64,000 bases of DNA from Rebecca billardiae RCC1528 (Eukaryota > Protista > Haptophyta). Below are positions 9,365-27,782 of the stretch, piece by piece. The notes below the pieces were generated by a model, which saw only the letters and a program-made list of their open reading frames with translations, was not told the origin of the DNA and searched no databases. The DNA is taken from NCBI GenBank assembly GCA_965240325.2, contig OZ251227.1:3100001-3164000 (forward strand). The letters run 5' to 3'. Every line of letters starts with the position of its first letter. Within the stretch, counting starts at the first letter, position 1. A program made the position numbers and the translations under genes.

Positions 9365-12039
9365 GGCCCGCGGTGCAGGGCGGAGCGCGTAGCGTGGAGC
9401 CCCGCCGGGGGCCCTCACTACGTTGTCAAAAAGATCTTTTGATCAAAGAAAAGGGGACGGGGGACGATTTTTACGGTTGTTGGAGGGTGAGTTTTCGCTT
9501 TTTCGAGGGGTAGATAGCTCTCTATCGCAAGATGCGGTTGACGAAATAGGCGCGCCCGGACGTGAGTAATAAGAAAGATCGAAGGCCGCTGGCCGTCACT
9601 TTGTCAGTAAAGTTTAGTCATCGTGTCATCGACGCTATTGAAAACTTGGTCGCCGGTCCAAGGGCCGTATTGTTTTGACAAAGTGCATGTGCATGGGTCA
9701 TATACTACGACTGTTTCAAACTGCATGTCGGCGTACCGAGCGCGCTGTTTGCCGGTTTGCATTATTTTGCGCACGCGGGGGTCATATTGAAAAAACCGTA
9801 GTAAACTGTAATCACGCCTTAACCAAGTGTGCACGTTAAAACATGGTAAATGGTAGAATATCGGGTTGAAGAATACTAACGACGAAGCTTTGCGCTCGCG
9901 TGGCTCGAGCGCGAGATGGATGAACCTCCTTTGCCATAATATGAAAGAAAAACGGGTTACCCGCCCGCCAGCGTCTCGCGACGAGGACGGGTGCCCTTAA
10001 GCGGCAAGCGCGCACATCATGATCATCGCCGTCGGCGGGCCCATCTTCGGCCGGCTCGAGCTGATGCACATCACGACGCTCAAGCAGGCGCTGTCCGTAC
10101 CGACGTTGGCGCGCCTCCAGCGGATGGTCGACAAAGCACCCGTGGGCGAAGGAGGACCACAATCATGGCCGAGTCATCGGAGACGTCGCTGACCTCGCGG
10201 CTTCAAACAATCAAACATCAACCGCTCAGCCGGTTGCCACCGCGGCCGAGCGGTGCGCGCTCGCCACCGCGGCCGGCGCTGTGCACGGGCGTGCTGAGCC
10301 CGGGCCGCGTGAGCTCGCCCACCTCGCCCGGCGCGCACGCCGACGCCGCCACCGCGGCTCGGCGGCCGGACTCATCTCGGCCCGCAGCGCTTGCGTCCCC
10401 CCGCGGCGGCGCGCGCCGCCGTCGCCGCCGCGCAGGCCGTGCACTCGGTGGATGAGGAGACGGCCCTGCTGCGCGCGGAGCGCTGCGCGCCGCGCGCTGC
10501 TCCTGCTGCGGCGCGCAGTAGTCCGCTCGTCCGCCCCGCGGGCTCGCCACGGAGCCGACGAGCGCGATGACGACAATCGAATGAGCACGAGTGCGCACGG
10601 AGGCGCTGGGCGCCGAGCTGGCGAAGCGCGGCGCCGAGCTCGACGCGCTGCGCGACGCGGCGACGGACGCGCTGGGCGCGCGCGGCGCCCTCGTCGCGAC
10701 GCCCCGTGCAGCAGCTCGAGCAGCCAGCTGTGGAGTAGACGGCCGTCGACTCGAGGGCGCCACCGTGCCGGGTGAGTGAGCACGCACGGGCTCCGCCTCG
10801 GTCGGAGGCTGGCTGGCCGCCGCCGTGGCTTCGAGGCCGACGCGGCGGAGGAGGCGGCGGGCGAGCACGGTGGCGCGGTGGAGCAGGCGCGCACGCGCGG
10901 CGGCAGGCGCGACCCACCGCTCGCCTCGTTCCACCCCGAGCTCCGCTCGGTCTCGCCTCTCGGTGCGCGGCTGCGCAGCGCCGTGAGCGCAGGCCGTGGG
11001 GCCGCTGGGGGTGGGGCCAGCAGAGTGGTGCGCGCTCTCGCTCTGCCGGCACGAGGCGCGCCGGCTGAGCGACCAGCGGCCCGTCGTCGAGCGCGTGGCG
11101 CAGCGCGAGCACCTCAAGGCAGGCTCGCCCTGCGCGCGCGCGCCGCTGCCCCGGCCGCCGTCCGTACTTCTTCGCGCGGGCCCGCGGCGACAGTCCTCAT
11201 CGGCCCGCCATGTTGACCAGACTGAGACAGCAGCCGACGGAGGGTGCACCGCGGGCCCCTAACTACGTTGGTTCTACGGAAGGACCGCGGAACGCGGTCA
11301 TATTACTAATTTAGCTGATCTGCTGATGCCGCAATTGTTGATTGAATAAAATTGTTGGACTTGGTGGCGGCCACTCTGACTCAGGGTTGATGATGATGAT
11401 CATGTTGTTGTCGTCGTCGACGTCGTCACGGGCCCGCCAGGAAGTGCAAGTATGGGAGTGGCCAAGATAGACGACATAGTCAGAGTGTAGCCTGGCAATT
11501 TGTAGTATAAGTAACTAGTCCATCAGTCTCTGATGACTCTGCCCTCTAGCTGCCGCAGGTGCTCGAGCAGGAGGCGGAGGACGCGACGCACCCGCGCGCG
11601 CACGGCGCGCTGGCGTACGACGCGCAGCAGATGCGCACGCCGGACAAGCAGCGCTCGACGCACGGCCCCTCGCCCGCCACCTCGCCCGGCCGCGCGCCGC
11701 GCGACGGCTTCGGCGCCGCCGCCGCTAACGAGCCAGATGGCCGTGACAACGGCGGCGGCGCGGAGGGCGCGGGCCCGTCGCAGATGCCGTCATCGGCCAC
11801 CTGCTAGTGCCTAGTGCTAGTGCCTAGTGCTGACGATGTACTGCTAGCATGAAGAGCATACAGTCGTGGGTCGTTGCGCATCATGAATGCTGCAGGTCTG
11901 GAGTGCCGAGGCTTGGTATGGTATGGGCCGAATAAAAAGGGGCGCGATTCCTGGGGATTCCTGGCGCGTCCCGCCGGTCGACGTAGAACGTAGAGCCCCG
12001 CTGGCCGCGCGTCAGGGCGACGGGACGCGCTGCTGGTCG

Positions 12040-14511
12040 ATGGTATCGACTGCGCCACCCCCAACGCCCCTGCCGCGCGCGCGCCTCGCGCTGGTGGCAT
12101 GGATGAACGTGAGCGAGGCGCTCGTGCACACGATGTGTCTCCCATTCGCCCCCTTCATGGTGCAGCACCTCATCGGAGCCGACGACGCGGATCCTCGCAT
12201 CGCGTACCTCCAAGGCTGTCTGGTCGCGGCGGCCAGCCTGGCCGAGTTCGTTGGCAGCTACCCGCTAGGCTTGCTGAGCGACCTGATCGGCCGGCGGCCG
12301 GTCATTCTGCTGGCCTTATTCGCGACCACCATTTGCACGCCGGCGTTTGGCTTCGCCACCTCGTACGAGATGGCTTTTGCTGCCCGCACAGTGCGCGGGC
12401 TGTGCGCGGCCGTCACGGGTACGACCAAGACGTACCTGTACGAGATCACCGACAGCTCGAATCGCGACCGCGCGTTTAGCGTGCTGATGGCATGCTACGG
12501 CTTCGCGCTGTGCATCGGGCCGACCCTCGGCGGCGCGCTCTCCGAGCCTGCCCGCACGTGGCCGTCCACCTTCCCCAATGGCTCTCTCTTCGACCGCCAC
12601 CCGTACGCGCTCCCGTGCGTCGTCGTCGCGGCGTGCAGCGGGGCGGCGGGCGTGTGCGCGTGGTTCATGCTCGCCGAGACCGTGCACCGACGCTCCCCGT
12701 CGATCTGCTGCCTCGACACCCAGCCGCTCTTGGACAAGGGCGCCGCGGACAGCGAGTCTGGCGATGCCTCGAAGCAGTCGGCTCAGGGTGGGTCTGACGC
12801 GAGCGGCAGTGCCGCTGGGCGTGGCGGCAGCAGCGCACTCGGCCGCACCGCCTGGCTGGCCGCGGTGCTGTACGGGATGGTCGCGCTGGTGGTGGAGATG
12901 ATACAGGTGCTGTGGGTGCTGTGGGCCAAGCTGCCCCTCGCCCAGCGCGGCCCGCACCTTGACGTGCGCACGATCGGCCTCTTGCAGGCGGTCGGAGGCG
13001 TGGGCATGCTCTTCTCGCAGGCGGTCCTCTACCCGCATGCCGTGCGCGCGTTCGGGCTCAGCCAGACGTTCCGCCTGGGCTGGGTCGGGCCGGTCGTCGC
13101 GTATGTGGCGATCCCCTTCACGGTCCAGCTCGCTCCGCCCGAGGGCGGGTGCTGGCCCTCCCCGTTCTGCGCGTTGCTGGCGGTGCTCGAGCTGCTGCAG
13201 ATGGCAAGCAGCTCGGCGCTCTTCACCTGCGTCATCCTGATGCTCTCCAACTCGGTGCCGAGCGGAGAGCTGGGAGCCGCGAACGGAGTGGGGCAGTCGA
13301 TCGCGTCCATGGCGCGCTTCGCCGCGCCGCTCTTCAGCGCTACTCTCGTCGGCCAGCTCGCCTCTGGCGCGCCTCCGCTCGACGTGCGGCTTGCCTTCTT
13401 TGCGGTGGCAGCGTTCGCGCTGCTCTCGGTGGCACTCTCGTACGCGCTGCCGCGCTCGATCGACCACGCGTTCGACGGCGCGGCATCGCTCGCTGGGGCG
13501 CCCGCGTCGCGGCGGCCGCACGACCCGAATCGTTTGCCAGCCGCGATCGAGCAGCGCATGATGTGCGCGCCGCTGGGGGCCGCTGACCCCCATGCCGTCG
13601 CGCTCGCGCGTGAGCGGCTCTCGGCGGAAGGGATGGTTGTGATCGACAAGGGCGCCGCGTTCTCCTCAGCGGACGAAGTGCGCGCATGGAGCGCGGCTCT
13701 TTTCTCGGCTGAGTATGACTACACTCGCAGCGGCGCGGCCGCTCGCGACAACCTGGGCGGCGGCGTGCTCGCCACCACCGGCAAGGCCGAGCGTTCGGCC
13801 GTTCAGCTTCTCGAGCACCCCGAGATGAGCTACGAGCGTGAGTACCCTGGGAAGCTGCTCTTTGCGTGCTTCGAGTGTCCGCCCGACAAGGCGCAGACGA
13901 CGCTGCTCGAGACCAGCGCTCTGACGCGCGCGCTGCGAGGGACAGCGCTCTGGCACAAGCTCGAGGCGCACGGCCTCACCTACCACTTCAAGTACTACTC
14001 TGCGGACGAGGTCGGTCCAGGCGGCCCGCCGCCAGTCCTGCGCCCGTGGCAGGACTTCTTCGGAGTGCGCACGCGCGCTGAGCTCGAGGCGGAGCTCGGG
14101 CGGCGGGGCATGCGCGCAGAGTGGCTCCAGGGCGAGGCCGGTGTGGTGCGTGTCTCACAGACCCTGCCTGCCTTCGAGCTGGACGACCAGGGGGACTTGC
14201 GTGTGCACTTCACCCTCGCCGTTCACGGCTGCAAGTTCGACCCTGACCCCGCGTGGAAAGGCGTGGCGCACATCGACAGGCCGTATCACTTCACGCTGGG
14301 GGACGGCGCCGAGCTGACGCACGCAGAGCTGGAGCTTGTAAGAGGCATGTACGACACGCACCGCGTGCTGCTGCCGTGGGTGCCCGGCAGGCTTGTCGTG
14401 CTTGACAACCAGCGCTGGATGCACGGCCGTGTCGCTTTTGCACTCGAACCACACGAGACGCGCAAGATCGGCGTCTGCACAGGGGAGAAGCGCACACGGC
14501 GCCTCGTATGA
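12040..14511 (+). CDS. MFS transporter (DHA1/ZIFL-like) fused to a C-terminal TauD/clavaminate-synthase-like Fe(II)/2-oxoglutarate dioxygenase
   Basis: Multiple hydrophobic helices, MFS motif A GLLSDLIGRRPV, and IGPTLGGALSEP..HPYALP. The same frame continues with EHPEMSY..PGKLLFAC (HxE) and VLDNQRWMHGR (distal His). The ORF is open from 11887; ATG 12040 is the likelier start. Confidence 0.8.
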   Translation: MVSTAPPPTPLPRARLALVAWMNVSEALVHTMCLPFAPFMVQHLIGADDADPRIAYLQGCLVAAASLAEFVGSYPLGLLSDLIGRRPVILLALFATTICTPAFGFATSYEMAFAARTVRGLCAAVTGTTKTYLYEITDSSNRDRAFSVLMACYGFALCIGPTLGGALSEPARTWPSTFPNGSLFDRHPYALPCVVVAACSGAAGVCAWFMLAETVHRRSPSICCLDTQPLLDKGAADSESGDASKQSAQGGSDASGSAAGRGGSSALGRTAWLAAVLYGMVALVVEMIQVLWVLWAKLPLAQRGPHLDVRTIGLLQAVGGVGMLFSQAVLYPHAVRAFGLSQTFRLGWVGPVVAYVAIPFTVQLAPPEGGCWPSPFCALLAVLELLQMASSSALFTCVILMLSNSVPSGELGAANGVGQSIASMARFAAPLFSATLVGQLASGAPPLDVRLAFFAVAAFALLSVALSYALPRSIDHAFDGAASLAGAPASRRPHDPNRLPAAIEQRMMCAPLGAADPHAVALARERLSAEGMVVIDKGAAFSSADEVRAWSAALFSAEYDYTRSGAAARDNLGGGVLATTGKAERSAVQLLEHPEMSYEREYPGKLLFACFECPPDKAQTTLLETSALTRALRGTALWHKLEAHGLTYHFKYYSADEVGPGGPPPVLRPWQDFFGVRTRAELEAELGRRGMRAEWLQGEAGVVRVSQTLPAFELDDQGDLRVHFTLAVHGCKFDPDPAWKGVAHIDRPYHFTLGDGAELTHAELELVRGMYDTHRVLLPWVPGRLVVLDNQRWMHGRVAFALEPHETRKIGVCTGEKRTRRLV

Positions 14512-14776: not shown

Positions 14777-16537
14777 TCACCACAGGCTCTGGCCGCCCTC
14801 GATCACGAGGTTGTGTCCCACCATGTACGAGGACGCGTCGGACGCGAGGTACACGACCGCCGCCTGCAAGTCCGTCACCTGCGCTAGCCGCCCGGCCGGG
14901 ATCTGCTCGAGCCAGGTGGCGGCAAGCTTGTTGAGTGCGGGGTTGTCCCAGATCAGGGGGGTGTCCACAATGCCAGGCGAGATGCAGTTGACGTTCAGGC
15001 CGCGCGACGCCCACTCGCACGCGAGAGACTGCGTCAGCTTGACCACGGCCGCCTTGGACGCGTTGTACGCCGCCTGCTTCTGCGGGTGCGGCACGAGCAG
15101 CGACGCCATCGACGCCGTGTTGATGATCTTGCCGCTGCCGCGCGCGAGCATGTGCCGCGCCTCGTGCTGGCAGCAGAGGAAGACGCCGCGTGTGTTGAGC
15201 GCGAACGTGAGGTCCCAGTCGGCGACGGGCGTGTCCTCGGCGGCGGAGTTCTTGTTCACGCCCGCGTTGTTCACCGCGATGTCGAGGGCGCCCTTCCACG
15301 CCACCGCCGCGTCGACCATCGCCTTGACGCTCCCCTCGTCCGCGCAGTCGGCGCGCACCGCCATCGCCTCTGCGCCCTTTGAGGCCAGCTCGGCGGCCAC
15401 CGCGTCCGCACGCGCCTGGTCCAGGTCGGCGACGGCAACGGCGGCGCCCGCCTCGGCGAGCGCGTGCGCGAAAGCGCGGCCGATGCCCTGTCCGCCGCCG
15501 GTCACGAGGGCCGTCTTGCCGCTCAGCTTGAGGCGGTCGAGGATGCGCGCCCCCCCCACGCCTCGCGTCACCTCGTCCGGGCCGGCTGCGCCGCTGGGCT
15601 GCGGCGGCGGCGCAGGGGCCGCCGCCGGCACGGGCGCCGCGGCAACCTCGGCGGTGGGCACCGGCGCCGGCAGCGGTGGCGCCGCGCCCTTCAGCCGCAC
15701 GATCGTGATCCCGTCGCGAAGCGGCAGCGTGACGATCTCGACGCGCGCGTCCGCCCTCACCATCTTGTTGAACTCGCGCAGCGCCTCGCCGCCCGCGTTC
15801 CAGCTGTGCGGGTCGTGCGCGGCGCGGCCGAGGTAGGGCACGCCCTTGAAGAGGACGTTGTCGATCACGATCACGCCGCCCGGCGCGAGCAGCCCACGCG
15901 AGAGCACCGTCTCGTAGTACGCCGCGTACGAGCCCTTGTCCGCGTCGATGAACACCATGTCAAGCGGCTGCGCCTGCGGCCACGCGCGCAGCGTCTCGAG
16001 CGCGTCGCCGATGCGCACGCGGATCTTGTGCCCGTGGGGCGACTTGTCGAAGATGGGGCGGGCAAAGGCCTCAAGGAACGGGTCCACCTCGCACGAGATC
16101 ACCTCGCCGTCCTCGGGCAGCGCCTCGGCGATCGTGAGCGCGCCGTAGCCGGTGAACATGCCGACCTCGAGCACGCGCCGGGCCTTGAGCATGTACGCAA
16201 ACATGGCGAGCGTCTTGGCCTCGACGATGTCCGTGGTCCACCGCTCGGAGAAGCGGAACACCGTCTTGCCCTGCGCGTGCAGCTCGTCCCACGGCGCGCC
16301 GCGCGTCTTCCGCTCGAGCTCGGCCGCCTCGGGTGACGGCGCAGACGTGCACTCGACCAGGTACTCGTCCAGGCCACGCGAGAGGCTGGCCGCCTCGTCG
16401 AGCAGGGCGGTGAGCCGCTCGTTGGGCGTGTCAGGCACGAACGCGACCTCCTGCGCGGACGGTGGCGCGGACGACTCCGCTTTCGCCGCAGCGGCGCCGT
16501 GCGCGCGAATGCCCGCGACCGAGCTGGCCTGCTCCAT
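14777..16537 (-). CDS. O-methyltransferase-SDR oxidoreductase fusion (MT-Ox-like, gadusol pathway)
   Basis: N-half: LEVGMFTGY, FIDADK, VIDNVLFKG (caffeoyl-CoA/MysB-type OMT). Pro/Ala linker. C-half: TGGGQGIG, NNAG, YNASK (classical SDR), ending GHNLVIEGGQSLW. The architecture and C-terminus resemble vertebrate MT-Ox as I recall it. Confidence 0.85.
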   Translation of the reverse strand: MEQASSVAGIRAHGAAAAKAESSAPPSAQEVAFVPDTPNERLTALLDEAASLSRGLDEYLVECTSAPSPEAAELERKTRGAPWDELHAQGKTVFRFSERWTTDIVEAKTLAMFAYMLKARRVLEVGMFTGYGALTIAEALPEDGEVISCEVDPFLEAFARPIFDKSPHGHKIRVRIGDALETLRAWPQAQPLDMVFIDADKGSYAAYYETVLSRGLLAPGGVIVIDNVLFKGVPYLGRAAHDPHSWNAGGEALREFNKMVRADARVEIVTLPLRDGITIVRLKGAAPPLPAPVPTAEVAAAPVPAAAPAPPPQPSGAAGPDEVTRGVGGARILDRLKLSGKTALVTGGGQGIGRAFAHALAEAGAAVAVADLDQARADAVAAELASKGAEAMAVRADCADEGSVKAMVDAAVAWKGALDIAVNNAGVNKNSAAEDTPVADWDLTFALNTRGVFLCCQHEARHMLARGSGKIINTASMASLLVPHPQKQAAYNASKAAVVKLTQSLACEWASRGLNVNCISPGIVDTPLIWDNPALNKLAATWLEQIPAGRLAQVTDLQAAVVYLASDASSYMVGHNLVIEGGQSLW

Positions 16538-20511: not shown

Positions 20512-21374
20512 TCCCTGATGATTCCCTGGGATGAAAAGCGGCGTGGTAGTCATATCATAATGATGATGATTACCGTGGGCGTAAAACATACTTTAGTTAA
20601 ATAAATCACGCCTTAACCAAGTGTGCACGTTAAAACATAGTAAACTGTATCATCACATCATTCATTAAATAGTACGTTGAACGTGTACGGTATTGATGGT
20701 GCAAGAAAACCTAGAGCCCCGACCGTTACACGGGTATATTAGGTCTCAGCGGCATGATGGGCATCCGGCGAATAAGTCATTCTGGGTCTCCCTGACACCA
20801 TGATACAGGCCCAACACCTCCAGGGACCTGAGCATCACCCTGGGACCTAATATTGCAGTCTGAAGTTGGGTGGGTCACTCTCGACGACGGCACGGCGGAC
20901 GGTCGTGATGCACGCGGGACAGCACATCAGGGGCATTCGGTGCACTAGCGAGGGTGGCATACGATGTCATCCCGACGTATGCATCCGTAGTATACTTGCC
21001 CGGCCCCAGGCGCCCTGTCATCCGGCACAATGTCACGTGCGCGGGCTTCACGCGGTCGTGATCGCGGGGTTCAACATGCTGTTCCGAACGAGCGCACGCA
21101 CGCGCGCCGGCGCGAGGCTAGCGAGAGGAATGCACCCCTCGCGTGCTCGCGCGGGCAAACGCACTTCGAGAGCATCCCACAGGCGCCAAGAACTTCCTCC
21201 GATGGCGATGCGCAAGCCGCTAGCCCCCACAAGCGCGGGGCGAACCACGCCGCAGGGCGGTGTCGCCGCTTCCCGCGCTGGGCCGGGGCTCTAGGTTTTC
21301 TTGCAACGTCAATATTTCCTCCGGACTGTCCATCCCGGATCGGTGAACGTTCGCGCGATTCACGGGGGACGAAG

Positions 21375-22808
21375 ATGGTGGGCCCCGCCACCTTCCAACT
21401 TGCCTGCGTGCTCCTTGCCGGCGTGCACTCGCCGCTGCACACCTCCACGCGCGTTACGGCGTTGCGCGGGCACGCCGACACGCTCGCGTTCTATGACGAC
21501 GCCTGGCACGCCCACGCCGACCCATCAACCGTGCCGCCGCACGCCGTGCGCTCGGCCGCGACGATCAAGGAGGACTCGCTGCCGTCCTCCTCCTCGCCCG
21601 GGACCTCTACGACCGAGTGGGCCGTGCGCGCGCCGCTCACGTTCGAGTACCGCGTGATCGAAGCGCCGCGCCTCTTCCACCCCGACAACGACGCCCTGCT
21701 CTTCGGCCACCTCGCCCCCGGCTCGGCCGCGCGCGCGCGCGCGCGCGAGCAGCGGCAGCGGCGGCTGGTTGTGATCGACCAGACCGTCGACGAGCTGTTC
21801 GGCGACGGGCTACGCGCGTACCTCGAGGCTCGGCGCGTGGATCACCAGATTGTCGCACTGCCCATGCTCGAGGAGACCAAGGACGTCGACCTCGTTCTCC
21901 AGGTCGCCGAGGCGATGAAGCGCTTTGAGCTCGCGAGGCGCGACGAGCCGGTGATCGCGATCGGCGGCGGCGTCTGCCTCGACGTGGTCGGCCTCGCTGC
22001 GACGCTCTTCCGGCGCGGCACGCCGTACATCCGCGTGCCCACGACGACGCTCTCGTACGTCGACGCCTCGGTCGGCGCCAAGTCCGGCGTCAACTTCATG
22101 GGCTCCAAGAACCGGCTGGGCGCGTATGTGCCGCCCGCGGCCGCGCTGCTTGACCCGAGCTTCCTGCGCACAGAGTCGGCGCGAGGCGTCTCGTCGGGCC
22201 TCGCGGAGATGGCGAAGATGGCGCTGGTCAAGTCGCCCGAGCTGTTCGAGCTGCTCGAGGCGCACGCCGAGCGCCTCGTCGCGCACCGCTTCCAGCCGCT
22301 CTCCGCGCGCGACGGCGTGCCCGGCCGCGTGCTCGGACTGTCAGTCCGGCTGATGCTGGACGAGCTGGCGCCCAACCTGTGGGAGGCGTCCCTCGACAGG
22401 CTGGTCGACTTTGGGCACGTGCTCGGGCAGGAGCTCGAGCTGCGCACGCTCGGCACGGAGCACGAGCTGACGCACGGCGAGTCCGTCGGCGTGGACATGG
22501 CGTTCATGACCGTCCTCGCCGCCGTGCGCGCGCAGATCAGCGAGGCGCAGCGTGACCGCATCCTGGCGATGCTGCGCCGCTGCGCCATCCCGGTGTACAG
22601 TGCGATGGTCGACGAGGCGCTCGTGCTCAGCGCGATGGTCGAGCGCCGCGCGCAGAGCATGGGACAACGACTGCCACTCCCCGTCGGGGTGGGCAAGGCA
22701 CGCATCTTCAACGACGTGAGCGAGGACGAGCTGCTTGGGGCACACCGCGCCTGGACCGACCTCTGCTGCACGCGACCGCCACCGGCGACACCGGCGACGC
22801 GCCGTTAG
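21375..22808 (+). CDS. Sedoheptulose 7-phosphate cyclase, 2-epi-5-epi-valiolone synthase (EEVS)-type
   Basis: GGGVCLDVVG, YIRVPTT, DASVGAKSGVN, KNRLGAY, MLDELAPNLWE, RLVDFGH and HGESVGVDM. In-frame ATG 21375 followed by a signal-like peptide. Confidence 0.88.
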   Translation: MVGPATFQLACVLLAGVHSPLHTSTRVTALRGHADTLAFYDDAWHAHADPSTVPPHAVRSAATIKEDSLPSSSSPGTSTTEWAVRAPLTFEYRVIEAPRLFHPDNDALLFGHLAPGSAARARAREQRQRRLVVIDQTVDELFGDGLRAYLEARRVDHQIVALPMLEETKDVDLVLQVAEAMKRFELARRDEPVIAIGGGVCLDVVGLAATLFRRGTPYIRVPTTTLSYVDASVGAKSGVNFMGSKNRLGAYVPPAAALLDPSFLRTESARGVSSGLAEMAKMALVKSPELFELLEAHAERLVAHRFQPLSARDGVPGRVLGLSVRLMLDELAPNLWEASLDRLVDFGHVLGQELELRTLGTEHELTHGESVGVDMAFMTVLAAVRAQISEAQRDRILAMLRRCAIPVYSAMVDEALVLSAMVERRAQSMGQRLPLPVGVGKARIFNDVSEDELLGAHRAWTDLCCTRPPPATPATRR

Positions 22809-23155: not shown

Positions 23156-24151
23156 ATGCTCTACGCTGTCACTGGCGCGAACGGCTTCATCGCCTCCCAC
23201 GTGGTGAGCAAGCTGGTCGAGCAGGGCCACAAGGTGCGTGCAACGGTGCGCAAGCCCGACGACGAGGCCAAGCTCGCCCACCTCAAGTCGCTCGGCGCGC
23301 CGGTCGAGATCGTCGTGCTTGCCGACCTCACGTCCGCAGAAGAGGTGGCGCCCGCGCTCAAGGGCTGCGACGGGCTCTTCCACATGGCGGCGGTGCACCC
23401 GACGTACGGCTTCGAGGAGACGCCCGAAGGCGCCGATGCGATCATCGCCCTCGCGGTCGAGGGCACCAAGGCGGTGCTCAAGGCGGCGGCCGCCGCGGGC
23501 GTGAAGCGTGTCGTCCTCACGAGCTCACTCGCGGCCGTCGAGTGTGGCAACGACACGGGCGTGCTGACCGAGGCGACATGGTCAAGGGAGGAGGTGTACA
23601 ACAGCTCAACATCGACGCAGTGGAAGACGCATCACGCGTACGTCAAGTCCAAGACGCTGCAGGAGCGCGCCGCGCTCGCCGCCGCCGCCGAGCTCGGGCT
23701 CGACCTGCGCGTGATCGCGCCGGGCAACCTATGCATCGGGCCAATCCTCAGTACACACATCAACGGCACGATGACGCGCGTGCGCGACGTGGTGCAGGGC
23801 TCAAACACGCTGAAGGGCTGCGCAGACCTCGGTGTAGTCCACGTCTCCGACGTCGCGCACGCGCATGTCGCCGCGATGACCACCGACTCCGCAAGCGGCC
23901 GTTACATCGTCGCGCAGAGCATGGTGCGGCTGGAGGACGTGTTCAGTGCGCTCAAGGAGCTCTGCCCGGACCGGCCGGTGGCGCCGATGACGAACATGGA
24001 CTACGCGTCGGGCACGCCGGGCAAGGCGCGCGCGATTGAGAGCCGCACCGAGGCTGAGCTGGGCGTGCAGTACGTGCCACTCAAGCAGACGCTCAAGGAG
24101 GCGGTCGACTCGATGGTGAGCAAGGGCTTCATCCAGGCCGCCGCCGCGTGA
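23156..24151 (+). CDS. NAD(P)-dependent epimerase/dehydratase / aldehyde-reductase-like extended SDR (DFR/CCR-like)
   Basis: VTGANGFIASHV, FHMAA, VLTSSLAAV and YVKSK catalytic motif. Confidence 0.88.
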   Translation: MLYAVTGANGFIASHVVSKLVEQGHKVRATVRKPDDEAKLAHLKSLGAPVEIVVLADLTSAEEVAPALKGCDGLFHMAAVHPTYGFEETPEGADAIIALAVEGTKAVLKAAAAAGVKRVVLTSSLAAVECGNDTGVLTEATWSREEVYNSSTSTQWKTHHAYVKSKTLQERAALAAAAELGLDLRVIAPGNLCIGPILSTHINGTMTRVRDVVQGSNTLKGCADLGVVHVSDVAHAHVAAMTTDSASGRYIVAQSMVRLEDVFSALKELCPDRPVAPMTNMDYASGTPGKARAIESRTEAELGVQYVPLKQTLKEAVDSMVSKGFIQAAAA

Positions 24152-24956: not shown

Positions 24957-26438
24957 TCAGTCGCCGTTCTCCTCCGTCATCTTGCCGATGCACAGGTCGA
25001 CCTTCGCCCAGCGGTTGCCCGACCACACGTTGCGTGCGAGCAACACGGGCACGTGTACGCAGTGCTGCGCGATGAATGGCAGCGGGTCAGCAGCGTCCCA
25101 GTACGCATCCTTCTTGCTTGCGAAGATGTGCAGCGCTGCGCGCGCGCGCTCGAGCACCGAGAGCCCGCGCGGCGCGAGCACCTCGTAGTACAGATCGGCC
25201 AGCGTCCAGTTCACCTCCTCCGCGGCCGGCACCGGCTGCACCGCGTCCGCGGGCGCGTCCGCGTTGGCCGCCATCGCACTCGGTTCCGCGAGCAGCGCGC
25301 GGCCAAAGTCGGCCATGTTGCGGTGGTACGAGGTGACGTTGGACGAGAGCCGTGGGTTGCACTCGATCGCGCGCGCCACGCCGTCCTCGCCGACGAAGAA
25401 GTCGATGCAGACGATGCCGCTCAGCTTGTACGTGCGCACGAAAGCGCTCACCCAGTTGAGGATGGCCGAGTTGCCCGCGTGCGTGTAGTTGAAGCACGAG
25501 ATTGACGCCTGGTTGTCCGTGAAGGTGAGCACGCGCCCGTCAGTGCACAGCGCGCACGAGGAGTACTCGACGCCCTCGAGCACCTCCTGCACGAGCCACG
25601 GCGCCTCCGCGCTCACGGCGAGCCCCGAGACGTACGCGCGCAGCTGTTGCTCCGCGCACGGCAGCTGGAAGAGGTCGAGCCTGCGCATCGGGTCGTAGTT
25701 GCACGACTTGAGCAGGTAGCGCTTGGGCGAGTGGCGCGGGAGAGCGGCGTTGAACGCGAGGATCTCGTCCATCGAGCGCATCCGCTGCGTGTCCGGCATG
25801 GGTAGCCCCGCCTCCTTCGCCTTCCGCGCGAACACGACCTTGTCGTCAAGCGCGAGCACGTCCTGCTCACAGAGCGACCAGCTGCGCACGCCCGGCGGGA
25901 GGCGCGAAAAGGCGCGCGCCTCGTACCGGCTGGCGGAGGGCGAGGTGACCGGCACGACGAGACTTGCGCCCTCGCGCTCGACCAGCTCGCTGATCGCGCG
26001 CTCGAACGCCTCGGACTGCTGCTCGGGGACAGGCACCGTCACAAACCTGTCCACGTGCCTGGAGAAGCGCGACGCCACCATCCAGTACTTGCGCGTCTCG
26101 ACGAGGATGACGCGGCAGCCCGCGGCGCGGAGCGCGCGGCACATGACGAGCGACTTCGTCATCTTACCGCCCGTCACGATCGCCGTCTTGCCGTTGAGCG
26201 CCAGCGGGCGCTCGCGGCCGCGCTTGCGCAGCCACTCGAGCGCCGCGCCGACGATCGCAGCCGTCACGACAAGGGGCGCGAGCATGGCGAGGCAGCCGAG
26301 GCAGAGCAGAGACCACGCGCGGGGCTCAATCATGTCGCGCAGGGAGCGCGCATGCGTTGCCACCGGCGAAGCCTCGCCCTGCTGCGCGCGCAGCGCATCC
26401 CCGACTCCGCGCGGCTCGATCGTGCAGGGCAGGCACAT
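24957..26438 (-). CDS. mysC: ATP-grasp ligase, MysC-like (mycosporine-glycine synthase type)
   Basis: TGGKMTKSL, ETRKYW..SRFS, LDDK, LKS..YDPMRRLDL, IECNPR, DPLPF and K.DLCIGK, all characteristic of MysC. The start could be 26438 or 26333. Confidence 0.88.
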   Translation of the reverse strand: MCLPCTIEPRGVGDALRAQQGEASPVATHARSLRDMIEPRAWSLLCLGCLAMLAPLVVTAAIVGAALEWLRKRGRERPLALNGKTAIVTGGKMTKSLVMCRALRAAGCRVILVETRKYWMVASRFSRHVDRFVTVPVPEQQSEAFERAISELVEREGASLVVPVTSPSASRYEARAFSRLPPGVRSWSLCEQDVLALDDKVVFARKAKEAGLPMPDTQRMRSMDEILAFNAALPRHSPKRYLLKSCNYDPMRRLDLFQLPCAEQQLRAYVSGLAVSAEAPWLVQEVLEGVEYSSCALCTDGRVLTFTDNQASISCFNYTHAGNSAILNWVSAFVRTYKLSGIVCIDFFVGEDGVARAIECNPRLSSNVTSYHRNMADFGRALLAEPSAMAANADAPADAVQPVPAAEEVNWTLADLYYEVLAPRGLSVLERARAALHIFASKKDAYWDAADPLPFIAQHCVHVPVLLARNVWSGNRWAKVDLCIGKMTEENGD

Positions 26439-26639
26439 CGTCGTCAGAATCGTCGGGAGACTACGAGAATACTACTACAGTCTTAGGAATCATCTATCGA
26501 TCGAGGAATCCGAGCGCGCGGGAAAAGCTGGTACTGTACAACGCGCGGATTCTCACGTCCTCGAGTCGCAGCGGCCCCGTTGTCACAGGCGACCACCCCA
26601 GTTCTCCAGGATCGTGATCCTTCCGCGCCGTGCGCGACG

Positions 26640-27782
26640 ATGCCAGCGGCCGAGGACAAGATGCGCGTGGTGCATCTGATGGGCTCCGCCGTGTCGGCGT
26701 ACTACGAGAGCCTGAGCACATTCTACGCGCAGGGCTGCGTCGACGGCGCGCAGGACGAGCTGACACGCGCCCACTTTGACTTTGCGTTTGCGATCGTGCA
26801 CGCGACCGCGGATGGGCCGCGCTGGTCGTTCCCAGCCGAGCTCTCCGAGAAGGCGATCGCGGCCGCGCCGCGTCTGACGCACGCGGAGGGTGTCCAATGC
26901 CTTGCCGCGATCGACGCCGACGTGTGCGTGCCGCACATGTTCTGCTACCCCGGCATGACCACCTATCGCGCCCTGCTCGACATGCTGGGCGTGCCGATCC
27001 TGGGTTGCCCGCCGGCGTGCATGGCGCTGGCGACGGACAAGTTCCAGACGCGCGCGGTGGTCGCGGCGGCGGGCGTGCGCGTGCCAACGGGCGAGCTCCT
27101 CCGCGCGGGCGAGCGCCCCAGCCTCGCGCTTCCCTTCGTGCTCAAGCCGTGCCGCGAGGACAATTCTATGGGCGTCTCGGTCGTGCGCCGGCCAGAGGAG
27201 CTCGACGCGGCGCTCGCCGAGGCGTTCCGCTTCGACGAGCGCGTGGTGTGCGAGCAGTTTGTGCCACCCGGCCGCGAGATCCGCTGCGCCGTGATCGAGG
27301 ACGAGCACGGCGAGCCCACGCGCGTGCTGCCGTGCCTCGAGTACTTTCTGAGCGAGGAGCACCCGATCCGCACGCCAGGGGACAAGCTGGCGAGCAGCGA
27401 GGACGGCAAGGTGACGGGGCTCGCGTCCGGAGCGCGCAAGTGCCCGGCGGAGCTGTCGGACGAGCTGCGCGCCAAGCTCGCGGATGCCACGATCCGCTCC
27501 CACCGCGCACTGGGCTGTCGCGACTTCTCGCTCTTCGACTTCCGCGTCGACCCGGAGGGCGAGGTGTTTTTTCTCGAGGCGTGCCCGGTGTGCTCCTTCT
27601 CGCCAAAGAGCGTGATCGTCTCGCTGGCGGACGCGGCGGCCGACGCGGATGTGGCGCACCCGGCGCTCTTCCACACGCTGCTCCGCCGGGCAGCTGGACG
27701 AGGCCAGAAGTGCAAGCCCAAGGCCAAGCCAGACGAAAAGCCAGTGCAGGTCTTTGGCATGCATGCAGACTGTGCGCGGTAG
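26640..27782 (+). CDS. mysD: D-Ala-D-Ala ligase-like protein, MysD-like (disubstituted MAA synthase type)
   Basis: HLMGSAVS.YY..LS..YA, PHMFCYPGMTTYRALLD, KPCREDNSMG, SLFDFRVD and FLEAC..CSFSPKS; divergent from mysC. Confidence 0.88.
   Translation: MPAAEDKMRVVHLMGSAVSAYYESLSTFYAQGCVDGAQDELTRAHFDFAFAIVHATADGPRWSFPAELSEKAIAAAPRLTHAEGVQCLAAIDADVCVPHMFCYPGMTTYRALLDMLGVPILGCPPACMALATDKFQTRAVVAAAGVRVPTGELLRAGERPSLALPFVLKPCREDNSMGVSVVRRPEELDAALAEAFRFDERVVCEQFVPPGREIRCAVIEDEHGEPTRVLPCLEYFLSEEHPIRTPGDKLASSEDGKVTGLASGARKCPAELSDELRAKLADATIRSHRALGCRDFSLFDFRVDPEGEVFFLEACPVCSFSPKSVIVSLADAAADADVAHPALFHTLLRRAAGRGQKCKPKAKPDEKPVQVFGMHADCAR

Follow-up and report, generated by a model that had tools for sequence, protein, structure and literature searches.

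An EEVS-like cyclase gene beside MT-Ox, MysC and MysD homologues in a haptophyte, and the altered pocket of its protist relatives

Described systems and the haptophyte locus

Zebrafish EEVS (LOC100003999) makes 2-epi-5-epi-valiolone, or EEV, and in fish its gene has as a neighbour MT-Ox, of which zebrafish zgc:113054 is the characterised gadusol representative (PMC4426668). Vertebrate EEVSs match ValA, the bacterial EEVS of validamycin biosynthesis, at 14 of 14 pocket sites, and this match served as the criterion for an animal EEVS (Osborn 2015, PMC4426668), in a study that also described EEVS/MT-Ox pairs in Aureococcus and Coccomyxa. A green-algal neighbourhood of EEVS, MT-Ox and MysC has since been proposed to give mycosporine-like amino acids (MAAs) with a gadusol core (Foflonker and Blaby-Haas 2020, PMC7826186). 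The cyanobacterial counterpart of EEVS is MysA, or DDGS, which leads to MAAs by way of desmethyl-4-deoxygadusol. According to a review, three residues are exchanged between ValA and MysA/DDGS, namely Leu267 to Glu254, Asp281 to Ala268 and His360 to Thr347, and mutagenesis backs the 267/254 and 281/268 pairs as discriminators of the two enzymes (PMC10666671). In the curated sequences of the Osborn 2015 supplement, these differences appear as ML.EL.PNLWE...R[LI]VD[FY]GH in EEVS entries and ML.LE.PNLHE...RVIA[YF]GH in DDGS entries.

The locus described here lies in a 64-kb window, by which we mean the whole stretch of DNA analysed. The window is eukaryotic, has a GC content of 59-81% and bears the gene for ribosomal protein L5e of the 60S subunit, along with part of a protein kinase; between 46000 and 56000 its GC content is 76-81%, well over that of the remainder. 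It contains a coding sequence (21375-22808, plus strand) for a 477-aa protein that we assign, by Pfam, HMMER, tree and strain comparison, to the sedoheptulose-7-phosphate cyclases of the eukaryotic EEVS-like clade. The vertebrate EEVS (zebrafish LOC100003999; P0126 in our trees) resembles this protein in having the validated pair of residues, Leu and Asp, an N-terminal extension and an MT-Ox neighbour, whereas MysC, MysD and an extra reductase are additional in the algal locus. The green-algal neighbourhood is closer in gene content, since it too combines an EEVS-type cyclase with MT-Ox and a MysC homologue, and its cyclases form the sister clade and likewise have no His360; the haptophyte cyclase, however, falls in a distinct clade that has Gln in place of Pro288, and its locus has, beyond this gene set, a conserved reductase and a homologue of MysD. 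With DDGS/MysA (Anabaena Ava_3858, PDB 5TPR; Nostoc sp. HK-01, L001) the algal cyclase has its fold and substrate class in common, and MysC and MysD occur in those clusters too, but the cyanobacterial enzymes carry Glu254, Ala268 and Thr347 at the sites occupied in the alga by Leu, Asp and Gln, are 31-33% identical to it and stand far from it in the tree. Our literature search found no report of an EEVS/MT-Ox locus in haptophytes. The chemistry of the cluster is nevertheless less unusual than a sequence-only reading of the window had implied, because a hybrid gadusol/MAA neighbourhood has already been proposed in green algae (PMC7826186).

The cyclase gene and its neighbours

In the translation of 21030-22808, the cyclase runs from an ATG at 21375 to a stop codon at 22806-22808, and the resulting 477-aa protein contains a full-length pair of Pfam domains (DHQ_synthase N, 3.9e-30; DHQS_C, 2.8e-18). 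A 477-aa product is also called on a contig from another strain (L004), which is 99% identical and colinear through the coding region, so we regard the coding sequence as intronless. A MITE-like insertion of about 620 bp (20691-21314, no strand assigned) ends about 60 bp upstream of the ATG and is missing from the other strain. It is bounded by 34-nt terminal inverted repeats that are 91% complementary around a perfect 21-nt core (TGCAAGAAAACCTAGAGCCCC), with TATT at both junctions. We rejected a longer cyclase reading frame beginning at 21030, since its added 5' part falls within this element, which gives rise to the spurious extension. We likewise rejected the reading of the strain difference as an intron, since neither a GT-AG nor a GC-AG boundary is present at the junction in L004 and the piece that it skips bears the terminal inverted repeats.

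The protein begins with a disordered, partly hydrophobic stretch (FQLACVLLAGV; residues 1-31, 21375-21467, pLDDT <50; all cyclase features are on the plus strand). Hydrophobic N-termini are found in aligned relatives too, and we consider this stretch a candidate targeting presequence, from which we infer plastid targeting. Residues 35-70 (21477-21584) are of a different kind. In the AlphaFold model they form a folded beta-strand extension (pLDDT 79-95; strands at 35-40, 43-47 and 58-69) with a conserved DDxW, which is common to the protist relatives and not seen in the aligned bacterial cyclases. As modelled, then, the N-terminal extension is more than a plain transit peptide. The model as a whole has a pLDDT of 88.7, and its top structural match is ValA (4P53; target-normalised TM-score, TMt, 0.94, 42% identity), as compared with a TMt of 0.88 and 31% identity for DDGS. 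ValA, the best match among solved structures, differs in being bacterial, in lacking the N-terminal extension, in having His360 and Pro288, and in serving the synthesis of a C7N-aminocyclitol rather than of a sunscreen. The glycine-rich motif GGGV (residues 197-200, 21963-21974) occupies invariant alignment columns, and we take it, from general knowledge of DHQS-type enzymes, to be NAD+-binding; the predicted metal ligands Glu278, His348 and His367 are intact and invariant in the alignments.

Divergently oriented from the cyclase is MT-Ox (14777-16537, minus strand), a fusion of an O-methyltransferase and an SDR (Methyltransf_3 and adh_short_C2) that is orthologous to the zebrafish enzyme, being 56% identical to Danio zgc:113054 and 72% identical to an Aureococcus protein. 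The spacing between the two genes is about 4.8 kb, to which the MITE-like element is one contributor. The same head-to-head pair was found on each of the seven related contigs whose flanks were long enough (P0004, P0035, P0059, P0105/P0285, P0114, P0117 and P0125). MT-Ox homologues are also present in the transcriptomes of two coccolithophores, Calcidiscus leptoporus and Coccolithus braarudii (P0336, P0339), which suggests that many haptophytes may have the gadusol pair of genes. Just past MT-Ox, a single open reading frame (11887-14511, plus strand) encodes an MFS transporter together with a TauD-type Fe(II)/2-oxoglutarate dioxygenase.

On the other side of the cyclase lie a reductase assigned by Pfam to the NAD-dependent epimerase/3-beta-HSD/NmrA type (23156-24151, plus strand), a homologue of the MysC-type ATP-grasp ligase (24957-26438, minus strand; 34% identity and 6e-84 to Nostoc MysC) and a homologue of MysD (26580-27782, plus strand; 43% identity and 1e-82 to Nostoc MysD, with Pfam support). 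The MysC and MysD homologues are both full-length and both within 5 kb of the cyclase. In a distant marine alga, the pathway genes are gathered into one 11-kb cluster (L098, Logan SRR31805820, 1-11650; also L097). Here MT-Ox and the cyclase are accompanied by a reductase that is 58% identical to the one in the window, a 538-aa protein, a ligase resembling MysC (50% identity) and an EamA transporter; a MysD homologue was not seen among them.

Active-site residues, phylogeny and the protist clade

The sequence-only reading had assigned the cyclase to the EEVS type, and not to MysA/DDGS, on the basis of two motifs, both of which are indeed present: MLDELAPNLWE at residues 327-337 (22353-22385) and LDRLVDFGH at residues 340-348 (22392-22418), the latter ending in the predicted metal ligand His348. 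Lying as they do inside a full-length domain pair, these are motifs of a conserved enzyme and not chance words. The family signatures on which that assignment drew agree with the Osborn 2015 entries for EEVS and DDGS, except that the W/H difference in PNLxE cannot be read as strictly diagnostic, since PNLWE occurs in one entry of that set that is otherwise, at both remaining sites, of the DDGS type, and GNLHE occurs in a Bacillus EEVS-type cyclase in our alignment.

ValA and DDGS numbering was placed through HMMER alignments to 4P53 and 5TPR with constant offsets of +6 for ValA and +34 for DDGS, and these offsets recover all three review-named residues in each chain. By both HMMER and MAFFT, the cyclase is EEVS-type at two of the three sites, with Leu331 (22365-22367) at the position of ValA Leu267 (Glu254 in DDGS) and Asp345 (22407-22409) at that of ValA Asp281 (Ala268 in DDGS). 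At the third, which corresponds to ValA His360 and DDGS Thr347, the two methods agree on Gln427 (22653-22655), neither the EEVS His nor the DDGS Thr; this residue stands beside a one-residue deletion, and disallowing the gap puts Ala426 at the site instead. Leu and Asp at ValA positions 267 and 281 are shared by all 149 aligned relatives and anchors except MysA, AroB and one sequence with Ile (P0199). Over a wider set of 14 ValA pocket positions, which we drew from general knowledge of DHQS and mapped from DHQS pocket residues, the cyclase keeps 12, including the metal ligands, Leu267 and Asp281, the exceptions being Gln427 and Gln352 (22428-22430), the latter at the position of ValA Pro288 and of His275 in DHQS. 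On this mapping, the cyclase would depart from the strict published EEVS fingerprint.

Sequence scores and phylogeny place the protein on the EEVS side. The HMMER comparison with ValA gives 6e-84 and 286 bits, and that with DDGS 9e-55 and 190 bits, about 96 bits lower. ValA and DDGS were compared through the HMMER alignments to their PDB entries (4P53, 5TPR), and our trees were anchored by a context-defined Nostoc MysA, annotated bacterial sedoheptulose-7-phosphate cyclases and fish EEVS P0126. The closest relatives of the cyclase are 50-66% identical and come from marine protist metagenomes and metatranscriptomes. The cyclase falls within a clade with 100/100 support that includes fish EEVS (representative P0126, about 47% identity); the sister group is made up of EEVS-like proteins from green algae (Trebouxia, Pycnococcus), with EEVS-type cyclases of cyanobacteria coming next, and bacterial EEVS-type cyclases branch just outside the clade that holds the cyclase and fish EEVS. 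Among the bacterial EEVS-type cyclases of 720-950 aa (P0159, P0136, P0130), many have an N-terminal ROK kinase or AMP-binding (adenylation) domain. MysA is remote in the tree, and an AU test rejects its union with the protist clade (p=0.0004, log-likelihood difference 34.6), the DDGS side being represented by a single, long-branched anchor, the MysA of the plasmid-borne mysABCD cluster of Nostoc sp. HK-01 (L001). A place in the DDGS clade, which the sequence-only reading had named as the outcome that would speak against it, is thus not where the cyclase falls, and the EEVS-type assignment itself, with which all tests made here agree, is supported on sequence grounds by Leu331 and Asp345, the 286 as against 190 bits, the clade with fish EEVS and the adjoining MT-Ox. 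The best bacterial genome matches reach at most 50% identity over the best segment and at most 46% over near-full-length matches, in a scan whose pattern contained VD[FY]GH and which returned only EEVS-type bacteria and no DDGS; such low identity argues against contamination or recent transfer.

The two pocket substitutions are not peculiar to the window. The protist relatives caught by a motif search (119 of 120) all have DFGH and, after it, at the Pro288 position, Gln in 113 cases, Met in five and His in one; at the His360 site, the roughly 120 protist relatives have Gln, Asn, Leu or Phe and never His, which is also missing from the green-algal EEVS-like proteins. Fish EEVS, on the other hand, retains both Pro288 and His360 (in DFGHLISP and RLQHSGG), whereas the alga has Gln at both and the one-residue deletion, so that the assayed vertebrate relatives do not share the altered pocket of the algal cyclase. 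No assayed member of the protist clade, algae included, was found in the accessible literature. By alignment, the altered pocket across this clade is a small new observation.

The clade also contains fusion proteins (among P0088, P0058, P0046, P0078 and P0124), in which the cyclase is joined to a transaldolase, to a glutathione S-transferase or to an O-methyltransferase. Transaldolase makes sedoheptulose 7-phosphate, and the cyclase-transaldolase fusion is therefore a hint that the substrate is sedoheptulose 7-phosphate. The O-methyltransferase-cyclase fusions, which come from metatranscriptomes, lie inside the protist clade and have no oxidoreductase domain; the named member of their subclade is the dinoflagellate Pyrodinium bahamense, whose own protein is unfused. 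Their methyltransferase domain is 37% identical to MysB and 37% identical to the methyltransferase part of MT-Ox, so that on identity the comparison is uninformative as to which of the two it resembles.

Proposed function and its alternatives

Phylogenetic placement makes the cyclase a member of the EEVS clade that very probably acts in an EEVS-like manner, and we think it likely that it is an EEVS proper, with EEV as its product, and hence the algal counterpart of the vertebrate enzyme. For its substrate, its product and the later steps, we infer the following scheme. The cyclase would convert sedoheptulose 7-phosphate to EEV, the known substrate of MT-Ox; the divergently transcribed MT-Ox would then oxidise and methylate EEV to gadusol, and the MysC- and MysD-like neighbours could attach amino acids to the gadusol core. 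These two neighbours also count against the scheme, since the canonical substrate of MysC and MysD is the 4-deoxygadusol core, and so do the altered pocket, the O-methyltransferase-cyclase fusions of the clade and a search for RNA evidence, which found none.

The presence of full-length MysC and MysD homologues so close by speaks for the view that the cyclase is instead a DDGS, equivalent to MysA, whose desmethyl-4-deoxygadusol would be methylated by the methyltransferase half of MT-Ox and passed to MysC and MysD to give ordinary MAAs. The O-methyltransferase-cyclase fusions of the clade, with their missing oxidoreductase domain and a methyltransferase as close to MysB as to MT-Ox, have an architecture that would suit a route through DDGS and MysB. 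Nevertheless, we regard a DDGS as quite improbable, because all three of Glu254, Ala268 and Thr347 are missing, because the DDGS score falls so far below that of ValA, and because tree and AU test set the cyclase apart from MysA. The conserved oxidoreductase domain of MT-Ox would, moreover, be left without a role. Gadusol-core compounds, termed gadusporines, have been shown to arise when the gadusol genes of vertebrates are put together with mysC and mysD from bacteria (Osborn and Mahmud 2019, as cited in PMC7826186). That the cyclase should be an ordinary 3-dehydroquinate synthase of the shikimate pathway is scarcely credible, despite the Pfam DHQ_synthase families to which it belongs and the label '3-dehydroquinate synthase' that JGI gives to its relatives, just as the sequence-only reading had expected of automatic annotation. 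Against the aroB model TIGR01357 the protein scores 181 bits, where the cut-off is 305; it is about 31% identical to E. coli AroB; and the DHQS residues Asn268, His275 and Lys356 (A. nidulans numbering), which E. coli AroB keeps, are replaced by Asp, Gln and Gln, in a gene context of MT-Ox, MysC and MysD. The EVS clade has been noted as one that would resemble DHQS were biochemical data lacking (PMC5133447); the present cyclase is far from DHQS in sequence scores.

A remaining alternative accepts the EEVS ancestry and places the change within it. Here, the remodelled pocket (Gln352, Gln427 and the one-residue deletion) would lead to another C7-cyclitol, or to EEV mixed with a dehydrated product, and the protist clade, with Gln or Met for Pro288 and no His360, would be a functionally distinct branch of EEVS that makes a DDG-like or second cyclitol alongside EEV or in its place. 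Differences at two of the 14 ValA positions across a whole clade, with the Gln at the first so prevalent and the loss of His at the second extending to green algae, speak for such a branch. However, both mutationally validated residues are of the EEVS type, these cyclases are found time and again in a tight pairing with MT-Ox, a known user of EEV, and the variety of residues at the His360 site is more suggestive of a loosened constraint than of a newly gained catalytic residue. We accordingly judge a changed product for the haptophyte enzyme unlikely, and are similarly doubtful of a functionally distinct branch. If it were true, a distinct protist branch would explain how dinoflagellates and haptophytes have MAAs without a DDGS of the cyanobacterial type.

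We conclude that the cyclase is a plausible and modestly new haptophyte addition to the known EEVS/MT-Ox theme. Its assignment matters for the annotation of the family, as well over a hundred sequences from marine protists probably bear the label '3-dehydroquinate synthase' wrongly, and for these a simple residue check, Leu/Asp versus Glu/Ala, offers a means of relabelling. The published 14-residue fingerprint is unsafe to apply uncritically to algae, since algal members have lost His360. For the alga itself, the identity of the cyclase sets the start of the locus, which either proceeds from EEV to gadusol as in fish or begins with desmethyl-4-deoxygadusol as in cyanobacteria. Vertebrates are thought to have acquired the gadusol gene pair from algae. 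If the EEVS assignment is true, this pair is held by haptophytes as well as by pelagophytes and green algae, and the adjoining MysC and MysD homologues would point to natural mycosporines built on a gadusol core.
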